Below are positions 6,189-58,462 of a DNA stretch of 64,000 nt, piece after piece (position 1 is the first letter of the stretch; every line of letters begins with the position of its first letter). The stretch spans positions 83,986,782 to 84,050,781 of the forward strand of contig NC_085842.1 in the NCBI RefSeq assembly GCF_035594765.1. Direction: 5' to 3'. The notes beneath the pieces are model-generated. The model saw nothing but the letters and a program-made list of their open reading frames with translations. It did not search any database and had not been told where the DNA came from. The position numbers and the translations under genes were made by a program. This DNA is from Anolis carolinensis. Lineage: Eukaryota.

Positions 6189-7212
6189 CACTGTAGCTGA
6201 ATAGAGGACAGAGGATCAAGTTGTGAGGAGAAACACTCTGGAGAAGAAGTCAGAACAAAGGGAAGCCTCCATTCCACTGTCTTGCTACTGCTGGCAAGAG
6301 TTGTTATATTTGATGTCAGCTTCAATTTTATATCCACTTTTTCAAGACTTCCAACTCTATTGACAATGTTTTCAAGACTTCCAATTCTATTGGCAGTGTT
6401 TTCCCTCAAAGGCCTTGTTCAAGCACTGTATTACAGAAGAAGATTTCCCATTTTGATGCCCACACGGATAAATTTTCTGTTTCAGGTAAGGCAAAGAGAC
6501 AAACTCATTTTTCATGGTTTCAAAAGACAAGCCTAAAGAATAATAATTTTGCTTCACGACCAATCCTTTAAAGCAGTGTTTCTCAAACTATGCTCCTTCA
6601 AGAGTTTTGGACTTCTGCTCCCAGAAATCCCAGCCAGTTTACCAGCTGTTAGGAACTGTGGGAACCGAAGTCCAAAGCATCTGGAGGACAGTTTGAGAAA
6701 GATTTGGAAATAATGTTTACAAGTTATGTGTGCAGTGTAGCAGGTAAGAAAATGATTGAAATGCTGTGTTTCAAGGAAGAACCAAAAAATAGCATAATAA
6801 GCCAGTGGTGATGGTAAGCCACCTCTTGCTATATTCTCCAAAGGTTTCCTGCTTTCAACACAGTATCACTACCTCTTTTTTAACTGAAGAGGAAATACTG
6901 GGCCTGATAAAGAGATCACCTATGTCAACACATCTTGATTGCCATCCACTCATCCCTGATTGATGGAAGGTCTTGTGACAGGCCTCTTATATATATCACC
7001 TGTATCAGTATCACACATTATGGAAATGGGTTACATGGCAGCTCCATGCATTCGCATAGTAATGGAAAATTGTTTTAGTATAATCGCCTAGTAATTAAAA
7101 AGAACTCCGCATATCTGCTACTTGCATTTTCCACCTCTGTGCAATAGCTTAGGTCAACTGTGTGGAAGTCACTTTAAAGCAGAAAAATATCTGCAAAATT
7201 CCTTCAAGAAAT

Positions 7213-7750
7213 ATGTCTTCTTTTCAGCTCACCCTCTTCATTTTAGCTCTTGTTGACTTGGCTCTCGGTGGACTCATCTCCAATGGCTTTCTACTTACAG
7301 TGATTCTCAGGGAATGGAACAAAAGCCGAAGCCTTGATTCCAGTGAACAGCTTCTTCTGAGCCTGGTTCTGACCAATTTGGGGGCATCTGTGACAGTGAT
7401 GCCAGTTTACATCATTGACTACATTATCCCCCTATTCTCCAGGAATTTTTCAAAACAAATAATGTACACCTTAGGTTATTTTCTTGTCATCTCTAGACAT
7501 TGGTTCACTGCTTGCCTCTGTGTCTTCTATTGCTTCAACCTTGTACACAGCACCCATTCCTTCTTCCTTTGGTGCAAACTGAGGATATCCTGGCTAGTAT
7601 CACGATTTATTGCAGGGTCTCTAGTTGTTTCCTTGTTTCTTGTCCTATTTATATTATTTTTTTACTCTTAGAAATATCCAAAGCAATACAACGATTGATA
7701 CAAAAAGCAATGAAGAAATGTTTCACTATGGTCACATTGATGTTCCTGAA
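7213..7750 (+). pseudogene. TAS2R: TAS2R-type bitter taste receptor pseudogene (frameshift/stop at 7671, 3' half deleted)
   Basis: MSSFQL...GLISNGF...EQLLLSL...WFTACLCVFYC...WCKLRI; homology to the 11606 gene continues in another frame to VPE at ~7750, then stops. Confidence 0.9.
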
Positions 7751-8754
7751 AAGCTGCAAGAGTAAGACTTTCCAAAAATTAAAAATACTTCCCTTACACT
7801 CAGTGAACCATCATCTGCAATAACAGGAATGCAAATCAAGAATAGATACAGTTACCACCAGGCTGTACCAGGGACACATATTTGCATTTCACTTCCTTTG
7901 CATATAGGTTTGCTATATTCCTGACTCTGAAATCTAGACGTCTAATTTGTATATTATGCAAATGATTATTAGGAATATTTTTAATTTGCATGTTTTTGCC
8001 ACTCTGTTTCAGATTTGATACTATTTTAACTATTAACTATTAACTATGAAATAACTAATATACAGTAATGTTGAAAGCACTTGACTTGTACTTTGTCTCA
8101 CCTTATATCTACTTTCCTTGCTGTTTGCACCCTCTCACTACATCTCTCACTATCTCTCTAGCTTCATCTTGTATCTTCCCAATGCCTTACTCCCTCCCTC
8201 TGCACCTCTGCCCTTCCTTGTCTCCTCTTGCCCAGTACCATTTCCCATTTGCCAGTTTTTTGTGTAACTCTGCTTCCCCAGTTGTAAGTCAGCAAGAGAG
8301 AAAACCAGGATGTGCTCCGTCTGATCTCACATTCCAGTAAATAAAGGTTGGATTTTTCCTGATATCCTCAGGAACACAAGGGCAACTGGAATGCTCCCAG
8401 GAACACCACTGTAGCTGAATAGAGGACAAGGGATCAAGTTTTGAGGAGGAACACTTTGGGGAGAAAGTCAGAACAAAGGACAGCCTCTACTGGTAGTGCA
8501 ACATTGCAGGAGTTGCATAATCAAACTCCTGCAGTGTTAGCAGTTCATGAAAATTCCCAAATGCTGAAACTCTACAATAGTTAAAGGAAAATACTAGTAA
8601 TACTTCTTTTAGTCCAATTCTAAGCAGCTCTACTCTAGTATGTACAATTACACTCTCAGATTTTCATTCCCAAACGTATTATTGGGATTATGTTAAGGGT
8701 GTGTGTGGAATCTCTGCAAGTCTATAGATCCAAGCTCTATCGGTTTTGACTGTA

Positions 8755-9120
8755 CAGTCTTCCCTCACTACTTTGCAGTTCACTTTTCACAGATTTGCTG
8801 TTTTTCAATACACTCTAAAAGAATATTATAAATAATAAAAAATTACAATTTACAGCCTAAGGAAGGGAGGAAAGAGAAGCCAAAGGGAGAGAAAAGGAGC
8901 CGAAGCGGCAACAGGAGGAGAAGGAGGCGATTTATCAACACATGATTGGTTGATAAAGACTTAAAACAGTGTATAACTACTAAAATAGTGTATAAATATT
9001 AAAATATATATAGCGTCCCAACTTTAGCTTCCATTCTTCTATAGTGTCCCTACTTCGTGGATTTTCACTTATTGCGGGTGGTCCTGGAACGTAACCCCCA
9101 TAATAAGTGAGGGAACACTG
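8755..9120. mobile_element. Tc1/mariner (Tigger/pogo-like) MITE
   Basis: TIRs CAGTCTTCCCTCACT / AGTGAGGGAACACTG flanked by TA. Confidence 0.75.
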
Positions 9121-56730: not shown

Positions 56731-57433
56731 ACTTTCATTATATGTTAGCAATTAGGCAGGCATTAGAGCCTCTGTCTGTCTTTTTCACAACTTTTTGCCA
56801 ATTTTCGCATGGGCCTAGATCTTGTTTGTGGCACCTGTGCATCCATTCACAGTCTGTTAGGGATTCCCTTATTGCAGCAACAGATGTTAGATGGAAGTCA
56901 AGCTCAGCTTGGGACACCTGTTCTTAAATAGCAGAGGAACCATGTAGTGGTTTTTGCCCATGTAGATTCCCATTACAGTATGTGGTCTGGATGCACTGGG
57001 AAGCAGGGAAGTTGACTGATCTTTGCAATCAAGCTACGTCTCTTAAGGTAAAATGTCAATAGATGATGTTTGCATTTTGTTTGAAGTTTGGCCGCAACAC
57101 CGAGTCCTAGAGAAGCCAGTTGACCACAGCAGAACAGTAGTTGGTTTAAGCAGCAGCAAAAATAAACATGGAAACTGCTCGGCAGTTGTATCTCAGAACA
57201 GTTCAAGTAGCAATCAGCAAGAGAAGTAGTAAACTGCATCAGCAAGGCCTGCAGAAATCTTTCCATTGATCTTCCTTAAGGTTTCCTTCTTTCACCATCA
57301 ATAACTGTGCCTCCTGACATCCTTCACTGGTAGAATAATATGTGAATTGTCTCTAGAAGACCTTCTCCACATAGTGTCAGAACAGAGACTGATACTGATT
57401 TATAGAATGTCTTTCAGGTTTGTATGTTCCGGT

Positions 57434-58262
57434 CAGGCATGTAGCCGGGGGGGGGGGGTTGAGGGGCTTCAGCCCTCCCCCCAAAATTCTCAGGGTGGTC
57501 CACGAGAAGGCCTTACTATTATGTGGCATGGTGGTGTCTTTGTCCGTGCCTGGGCCCTCGGCTCACTCTCTTTCCTTTTCGGTGCCCCTTGTTTCAGCCT
57601 TCAGTGCCGGGAGAGGAAGGGGAGTGCGCCGACAGCCCAGGCGCCAAAGAGGATGCTGCCACACCACAGACCATTCGGAGGCCGCAATAGGCCTTCGTGC
57701 CTGTGCATTCGGCAGGCCTTTGCGCCCATGCATCGAAGTCTCGCCACACTTGTGGCTGGGAGTGGAATGCGTCAAGCCCGTCGGCTGCCTTCTAAGACTC
57801 TCTGGATCCAGGAAAACAACAAGTCCATTTGAAAAAGAGCAATCATTCCCCAATCCCTGCCTCTATGCACAGATTGTTTTCAACCATGAAGAGAGTGAAA
57901 AGTATATCAGGAAGTTTAATGACAGGCCAGAGACTTAGTGGACTAGCAATGATTTCCATCCATTGGGTCATCACTATCAAACCAGAAAAAGTAATTGACA
58001 AAATGGCCGGGGAGAAGAAAAGAAGATTGTTGCTGTAAAGTAAAAAATAAGTCAAAAAGTATTCTAAACATTTTGTTAATGAAAGTAAATAAATAACATT
58101 TATTATTTAAACTGTTATGTTTATTCATATCATGATCTGATCACCATGCTATATGCATGGGGGTATTGGCATAACGATACAAAAGGTTTGCTACGGTAGA
58201 TCCTCTCTCACTCAGACTCGCCCCCCCCCCCCCCCCGAATCAAAATCCTGGCTACGGGCCTG
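57434..58262 (+). mobile_element. Internally deleted hAT transposon with C-terminal dimerisation-domain remnant
   Basis: TIRs CAGGCATGTAGCC / GGCTACGGGCCTG; TSD GTTCCGGT/GTTCCAGT; peptide RLFSTMKRVK...MTGQRLSGLAMISIH. Confidence 0.85.
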
Positions 58263-58462
58263 GTTCCAGTCAATCATTAAGGAAATGAGAGCCCTATTAA
58301 TTTGCCTACATTGATGAATAGCCTGCTTATGTGATTCTGAGTATGTTAAAAAGAACACCACATACCTGCTACCTACACTTTTTAATTCAGCTCAGTCAAT
58401 GTGGGCATGTGAATGAACACCCCTTTACAATAGGGGCTGCAAAAACCAGACCAACAGGAGAC

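Follow-up and report, generated by a model that had tools for sequence, protein, structure and literature searches.

A class II POU octamer in a conserved candidate promoter of squamate TAS2R bitter-receptor genes

What switches on the members of a bitter-receptor family that multiplies by duplication, and does each copy carry its own switch? This question is raised by a stretch of 64,000 nucleotides from Anolis carolinensis (NCBI RefSeq assembly GCF_035594765.1, contig NC_085842.1, positions 83,986,782 to 84,050,781 of the forward strand), which we call the window. It is a cluster of TAS2R genes, five of them intact and four broken, all on the forward strand, and each locus is named here by the window position of its start codon. 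A preliminary description of this DNA, made from the letters alone, had claimed that a POU octamer stands upstream of all nine TAS2R loci. According to a 2023 study, little is known about the regulation of Tas2r genes (PMC10239704). The reading that we favour, with moderate confidence, is a family-wide TAS2R promoter of about 200 bp with a class II POU octamer in sense orientation, which is most likely read by POU2F3.

The octamer and its promoter block

The ten sites listed in the preliminary description were confirmed in their letters, their coordinates and their distances to the ATG. At nine of nine loci, ATTTGCAT or a one-letter variant of it lies in sense orientation between -121 and -163 from the ATG, and the nine primary octamers have a mean position of -148 with a standard deviation of 12. 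The octamer is exact at six sites, which are distributed over five of the nine window loci, and carries one mismatch at the four other loci. Read from the opposite strand it is ATGCAAAT, and its usual longer context is TATGCAAAT. The statement that the octamer is usually followed by AGT holds for seven of the ten sites, and the distance of -141 given for the site at 26331 was likewise borne out after removal of a 2,966-bp insertion.

The flanks of these genes had been regarded as poorly alignable. This view was not borne out, as about 200 bp of the 5' flank are homologous among the paralogues. When 220 bp of 5' flank were aligned locally among nine intact genes, all 36 pairs exceeded a z of 3 (median z 10.8), whereas the 3' flanks of the same nine genes gave a median z of 0.6 and no alignment. 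Because the 5' flanks align and the 3' flanks do not, we conclude that the 5' block is maintained by selection and not by recent copying. MAFFT alignments of the nine window loci and of 16 squamate promoters (Anolis carolinensis, A. sagrei, Sceloporus, Elgaria, Varanus and Rhineura) resolved a single block of homology, about 200 bp long, which contains, in 5' to 3' order, TATGGAAAT, GGTTACATGAGAG, the octamer together with AGTTTGATGA, the TATA-like TTAAAAAG, CTGCTACCTGCAYTTTCC, TCAGCTCA and the start-codon context CAGGAGATATG.

A search of the window with a promoter profile (nhmmer) recovered nine blocks in ten match segments, one locus being split, all on the forward strand and each directly upstream of a TAS2R body or remnant. 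The sole additional match, a partial one at 11382-11425, reflects a tandem duplication of 50 bp (11382-11468) in the promoter of 11606, which doubles both the GGAAAG box and the octamer. The earlier proposal that a compact octamer promoter travelled with each duplication is thus far supported. About 60 bp upstream of the 58463 block there is also a run of 16 C (58228-58243).

The octamer is enriched in the window as well as in the promoters. Exact copies of ATTTGCAT occur 24 times, compared to 5.6 ± 2.6 in dinucleotide shuffles, and the 11-mer ATTTGCATAGT with at most one mismatch occurs 14 times, compared to 2.1 expected; eight of these 14 are the TAS2R upstream sites. Roughly two thirds of the exact window octamers lie away from TAS2R promoters, many of them within a repeated intergenic module described below. 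In a search that did not presuppose the motif, ATTTGCAT was the top strand-specific 8-mer between -250 and -50, whether the window set, the 16 squamate promoters or all 28 genes were counted. Over these 28 TAS2R starts, taken from 11 DNA stretches, 13 exact sense octamers fall between -200 and -100, where 0.26 would be expected from the rest of the same DNA if shared descent is ignored.

For the position of the core promoter, a different picture emerged than the one first drawn. AT-rich TATA-like words had been placed at -35 to -55, and these are lineage-specific and lie outside the conserved columns; the conserved box is found at -96 to -118. This TATA-like box (TAAAAAG, TAAAATG or TTTAAAG, a word list chosen after inspection) follows the octamer at a distance of 22-47 bp in 14 of 14 promoters. 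Further downstream stands a TGCAYT-type word, the A of which lies 28-30 nt past the box and which matches the strict initiator BBCABW in six of the 14 promoters. ATG triplets, counted in 19 intact genes, amount to 1.88 per 100 nt upstream of -90, as expected, and to 0.70 in the last 90 nt. Based on the box at about -110, the TGCAYT word and the depletion of ATGs after -90, we predict a transcription start near -80; the octamer would then precede this start by about 55-80 bp. The analogy to immunoglobulin V promoters, already drawn in the preliminary description, fits this geometry of octamer and TATA-like box as far as it can be deduced from the letters.

In 13 of 17 promoters, a second conserved box, TATGGAAAT, precedes the octamer by 30-31 bp (for example at 7020-7027 and 49725-49732 of the window). 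On the opposite strand it reads ATTTCCATAGT, the octamer word with one change, and it may represent a weak octamer in inverted orientation or else a GGAA-core (ETS/NFAT-like) site. The idea of a required inverted second octamer was rejected: 18% of the octamer-like sites in the remainder of this DNA likewise have an inverted partner within 100 nt, and the pairing is not significant.

Constraint on the octamer and its presence in other species

In the alignment of the 16 squamate promoters, the octamer ranks first among 288 eight-column windows. Mean pairwise identity reaches 0.924 in the octamer, whereas the other upstream columns attain 0.483 and the initial 57 nt of coding sequence 0.605. 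Shared descent was taken into account by counting parsimony steps on the protein tree of 12 intact genes, which comprises a total of 4.6 amino acid substitutions per site. The octamer required 0.25 Fitch steps per column, the other upstream columns 2.46, and codon positions 1, 2 and 3 required 2.07, 1.58 and 2.26, respectively; for TCAGCTCA the value was 0.62 and for TATGGAAA 1.12. In 100,000 random draws of eight upstream columns, no set reached a value as low as that of the octamer, which changes at a rate ten times below that of neighbouring promoter columns and six times below that of second codon positions. An octamer no more conserved than its neighbours had been named beforehand as the outcome that would speak against a promoter code; both the rank and the step counts point the other way. 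Judged by these alignments, the octamer is under strong purifying selection and is the most constrained element of the block.

Among the 12 intact main-clade genes, the octamer is exact in eight and has one mismatch in the other four. The adenine at octamer position 5 is kept in all intact genes and in the bird variant described below, and is lost only in the 7213 pseudogene (ATTCGCAT). The variant ATTTGCCT at 58300 is old, since it is common to the Sceloporus orthologue. Promoter-like blocks without a detectable TAS2R body were found in Elgaria (L001:7203-7359 and 6955-7004), Sceloporus (L002:2024-2128 and 2274-2325) and Varanus (L006:5586-5697) and probably derive from genes that were lost. 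The octamers of these relic blocks are perfect, mismatched at one position or decayed at a ratio of 1:3:2, which would fit relaxed constraint, although only as a trend. Phylogenetic footprinting between A. carolinensis and A. sagrei was tried and rejected, because the two species are too close and intergenic DNA aligns at 77-89% almost everywhere.

Exact sense octamers are present upstream of TAS2Rs at -132 in Elgaria, -152 in Sceloporus, -143 in Varanus and -152 and -148 in A. sagrei, and the TAS2R of Rhineura has GTTTGCAT at -121. In Rhineura (L003) and Varanus (L006) the TAS2R is nested in an intron of an acylaminoacyl-peptidase (APEH)-like gene and runs antisense to it. In the gecko Heteronotia, three TAS2R loci have the exact sense octamer at -145, -169 and -169, and these receptors share only 25-30% protein identity with the Anolis genes. 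The gecko flanks gave no significant match to the squamate promoter profile (p 0.1 and 0.6), and for this reason our claim for geckos is limited to retention of the octamer; as far as these flanks tell, it has outlived the surrounding sequence there.

In two birds (Pithys and Athene), five genes carry ATTTACAT, which is the octamer with one letter off, at -177 to -181, and a canonical TATAAAG stands 67 bp downstream of it. A match to the squamate profile was obtained for the bird 5' flank (p 0.001 and 0.009). At the same offset from the octamer, -20 to -12, GTAACAGAA is found at two gecko loci and in three Pithys genes (L004:9980-9990, L004:18672-18682 and L005:9800-9810), and the owl (Athene) has GTAAGGGAA at this position. 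Since the offset of GTAACAGAA is the same in geckos and in Pithys, the arrangement suggests a bipartite promoter that predates the split between birds and lizards. The octamer is retained in three TAS2R clades with only 25-33% mutual protein identity.

The cluster, its octamer-rich modules and mobile elements

The Pfam family PF05296 spans the full length of the five intact open reading frames (ORFs) with E-values from 5e-40 to 1.5e-52, and the four remaining loci are partial or broken. The closest named relatives of the ORF at 32048 are Anolis TAS2Rs. All features with their positions are collected in Table 1.

Table 1. Promoter blocks, octamers, TAS2R loci and further elements of the window, in order of position (distances are counted from the ATG).
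Feature	Positions	Strand	Remarks
Octamer-rich intergenic module, reference copy	4965..5400	+	other copies at 2207-2486, 7748-8411, 21701-21978
Promoter block of broken 7213	7016..7211	+	GGAAAT box 7020-7027; TATA-like 7096-7102; profile E 1e-36
Octamer variant ATTCGCAT	7050-7057	+	-163 from ATG 7213 (pseudogene)
TAS2R pseudogene, N-terminal half only	7213..7671	+	PF05296 positions 1-148; homology stops near 7632
Promoter of 11606 with 50-bp tandem duplication	11382..11604	+	TATA-like 11496-11502
Two exact octamers ATTTGCAT	11409-11416 and 11459-11466	+	-197/-147 from ATG 11606
Intact TAS2R, 300 aa	11606..12508	+	PF05296 E 5e-40
Promoter of 15341	15151..15340	+	TATA-like 15233-15239; profile match
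Octamer variant TTTTGCAT	15187-15194	+	-154 from ATG 15341; alternatively ATTTTGCAT with one extra T
Intact TAS2R, 301 aa	15341..16246	+	PF05296 E 4e-48
Split promoter, 5' half	26295..26389	+	profile positions 2-96 here, 83-196 at 29350-29445
Octamer variant ATTTGCAC	26331-26338	+	-141 from ATG 29446 once insertion removed
Transposon insertion splitting promoter, 2,966 bp	26385..29350	+	reverse-transcriptase ORF 27027-28469 (RVT_1)
Split promoter, 3' half, and TAS2R pseudogene, ATG 29446	29350..30346	+	stops break frame
Promoter of 32048	31866..32047	+	TATA-like TAAAATG 31934-31940; profile match
Exact octamer	31902-31909	+	-146 from ATG 32048
Intact TAS2R, 297 aa	32048..32941	+	PF05296; 100% to Anolis carolinensis chromosome protein
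Promoter of 44705	44524..44704	+	TATA-like 44591-44597; profile match
Exact octamer	44560-44567	+	-145 from ATG 44705
Intact TAS2R, 299 aa	44705..45604	+	PF05296 E 7e-44
Promoter of TAS2R remnant 46967	46810..46965	+	profile match
Exact octamer	46846-46853	+	-121 from ATG 46967 (remnant)
TAS2R remnant, ATG 46967, 47 open codons	downstream of promoter 46810..46965	+	
Promoter of 49904	49721..49902	+	ATGGAAAT box 49725-49732; TATA-like 49798-49804; profile match
Exact octamer	49755-49762	+	-149 from ATG 49904
TAS2R, single in-frame stop at codon 63	49904..50746	+	translation; PF05296 on 50132-50746
Promoter of 58463	58273..58461	+	TATA-like 58347-58353; profile match
Octamer variant ATTTGCCT	58300-58307	+	-163 from ATG 58463; same variant in Sceloporus orthologue
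Intact TAS2R, 298 aa	58463..59359	+	PF05296 E 1.5e-52

The repeated intergenic module has a length of about 280-400 bp, occurs in four copies in the cluster and contains as many as four octamers, two of them inverted relative to each other at a distance of 51 bp. Across five module copies, the four of the window and a further one at L007:1223-1500, one ATTTGCAT is invariant. The copy at 21701 is 89% identical to the syntenic stretch of A. sagrei, which makes it the best-conserved intergenic piece besides the promoter (94%). The module is possibly a POU-bound enhancer of the cluster, or possibly a local repeat.

The insertion that splits the 29446 promoter is framed by an 8-bp target duplication, TTCAAATG, at 26377 and 29351. 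It had been labelled a hAT element, and the 8-bp duplication together with the YAGGG (TAGGG/CAGGG) ends does fit a hAT shell; the reverse-transcriptase ORF that it carries does not. It is either a nested element or no hAT at all. A Ty3/gypsy-type retrotransposon lies on the reverse strand at 35347-40079, with a pol ORF of 1,224 amino acids (protease, reverse transcriptase, RNase H, integrase and chromodomain) that is preceded by gag pieces with a zinc knuckle. Another RVT_1 ORF (47966-49292, forward strand) is located between the 46967 remnant and the 49904 promoter. A scan of the window with Rfam gave no match to an RNA family.

Candidate factors reading the octamer

In the mechanism we propose, each TAS2R would carry a conserved proximal promoter of about 200 bp that is copied with the gene at every duplication. 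Its class II POU octamer, in sense orientation, would be followed after 22-47 bp by a TATA-like box at about -110; transcription would start near -80 at the TGCAYT initiator-like word, so that TCAGCTCA would then fall into the predicted 5' untranslated region (UTR). A factor of the POU2 class, most likely POU2F3 and probably together with a coactivator of the OCA-T type, would bind the octamer and limit transcription to taste type II or tuft-like chemosensory cells, in the same way as Oct factors act with OCA-B at immunoglobulin V promoters. POU2F3 reads the octamer like POU2F1, and binding of OCA-T requires adenine 5 (PMC12755459); the coactivator is considered probable because every intact gene has kept this adenine. 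The open chromatin of type II taste cells of the mouse is enriched in POU-family motifs, and the Tas2r genes are selectively open in these cells (PMC10239704), and the regulons of Pou2f3, Ascl2 and Spib mark type II and tuft cells (PMC9995038). The retention of adenine 5 and the Pou2f3 regulon of these cells make a promoter read by POU2F3 the most likely reading.

Several points weigh against it. The octamer alone cannot separate POU2F3 from POU2F1 or other POU factors, nor activation from repression, and the authors of the mouse study suggest that Pou2f3 may act as a repressor (PMC10239704). The intact genes 58463 and 15341 carry variants (ATTTGCCT and TTTTGCAT) that are expected to weaken contacts of the POU-specific domain. 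Conversely, a perfect octamer is retained at two broken genes, and the contrast between intact and broken loci is a non-significant trend, with perfect sites in 8 of 12 intact genes and in 3 of 11 broken or relic loci. Frogs are inconsistent: in five genes from two loci, the octamer is exact at -84 in one, has one mismatch at -108, -234 and -278 in three others, and is absent within 300 bp in the fifth. In addition, YAG-CAG words 25-35 nt before several ATGs are possible splice acceptors.

Such acceptors, which frog genes also appear to have just before the ATG, would be in agreement with a conserved block that is itself transcribed, as 5' UTR or upstream exon, or that acts inside the transcription unit. 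The real promoter would then be located further upstream, and the octamer would be an intragenic enhancer or a signal at the RNA level. We consider this improbable in view of the conserved upstream ATGs inside the block (TATGGAAAT and CATGAGA), the ATG depletion that sets in only after about -90, and the order of the elements, with the TATA-like box and the initiator-like word 30 nt on both downstream of the octamer and a canonical TATAAAG in birds. A functionless octamer, common to the genes only by descent or by gene conversion among recent copies, would draw on the fact that the main-clade promoters are all homologous and their site counts are not independent. This explanation is already contradicted by the randomised 3' flanks of the same genes, by the slow change of the octamer relative to both neighbouring columns and second codon positions, and by its persistence in gecko promoters with flanks diverged beyond recognition, and we give it hardly any credence.

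A functional octamer may instead be read by the ubiquitous POU2F1/Oct-1, or by another POU or homeodomain factor, and serve general promoter strength, with specificity coming from the GGAA-core box, from TCAGCTCA or from distal elements. The POU2 paralogues are inseparable by sequence (PMC12755459), the GGAA-core box and TCAGCTCA are strongly conserved too, and the ETS factors Spib, Ehf and Elf3 have been implicated in type II and tuft cells (PMC9995038; PMC10901246). Since constraint on the octamer greatly exceeds that on the other boxes, and since at immunoglobulin genes the octamer itself confers specificity via a cell-restricted coactivator, we regard this explanation as unlikely, albeit one to be reckoned with. 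The possible repressor function of Pou2f3 (PMC10239704) would also allow a negative role of the octamer, or a role in gene choice, either as a repressor site or through promoters that compete for the octamer-rich intergenic modules, which are present in four copies in the cluster and have syntenic counterparts in A. sagrei. In known cases, however, octamers proximal to a TATA box activate, as in immunoglobulin, H2B and snRNA promoters, and we see little chance for a repressive or selecting octamer.

Immunoglobulin promoters of the V-kappa type carry ATTTGCAT about 70 bp upstream of the start and a TATA box at -30, and are bound by Oct-1 or Oct-2 with OCA-B. Like the TAS2Rs they belong to a multigene family in which every copy has the same sense octamer, with a TATA-type box some tens of bp downstream; the adenine at position 5 for OCA-type coactivators is kept, and the promoter moves with each duplication. 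The two systems differ in the cell type and in the proteins, presumably POU2F3 and OCA-T here and Oct-1/2 and OCA-B there; moreover, the start of the TAS2Rs is predicted from sequence, and the lizard TATA-like word (TAAAAAG/TAAAATG) is weak. Olfactory-receptor (OR) promoters have family-wide O/E and homeodomain sites, and OR genes usually possess upstream non-coding exons. They resemble the TAS2R promoters in that most genes of a large receptor family have a short common set of motifs next to their start site, and differ in motifs, factors and cell type. The TAS2R octamer promoter would join the known octamer-plus-TATA promoters of multigene families.

The closest precedent is the Oct site upstream of TAS1R4, where ATGCAAAT is conserved across distant vertebrates including lizards and was discussed as a possible Skn-1a/Pou2f3 site (Nishihara et al. 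2023, PMC10781636). The authors did not find the Oct site at the other new TAS1Rs (PMC10781636). In both cases a conserved octamer stands upstream of a taste-receptor reading frame, but TAS1R4 is a single orthologous gene from the class C TAS1Rs, an unrelated family, whereas the TAS2R site is family-wide and its constraint has been measured. The tuft-cell programme of POU2F3, OCA-T1 and OCA-T2 uses the same DNA word, and TAS2Rs are expressed in POU2F3-dependent lineages (PMC12755459; PMC9534498). In contrast to the genes studied here, this programme was described in human tumour cells and in mouse, and the texts searched do not list TAS2R promoters among its targets (PMC12755459; PMC9534498). 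A full-text literature search, with most subscription journals outside its coverage, yielded no report of the octamer in TAS2R promoters.

POU2F3 is the master factor of the type II taste and tuft lineages, and a direct link from it to the receptor genes is not described in the literature searched. The octamer is a simple and testable candidate switch for the expression of bitter receptors and provides a sequence rule for spotting TAS2R promoters and promoter relics in new genomes. If the reading by POU2F3 is true, the TAS2Rs would be the second case, after the immunoglobulin genes, of a fast-duplicating family that is placed under one lineage factor via a portable octamer promoter. A bolder version, which we put forward tentatively and consider doubtful, would see in the octamer, its partner boxes and the octamer-rich modules an ancestral promoter code of sauropsid and perhaps all tetrapod TAS2Rs. 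Bound by POU2F3 and OCA-T, this code would be enough to keep bitter receptors within POU2F3 lineages, and competition for the modules would shape the choice of receptor. It would then represent the counterpart, in taste and tuft cells, of the immunoglobulin V promoter/OCA-B system.

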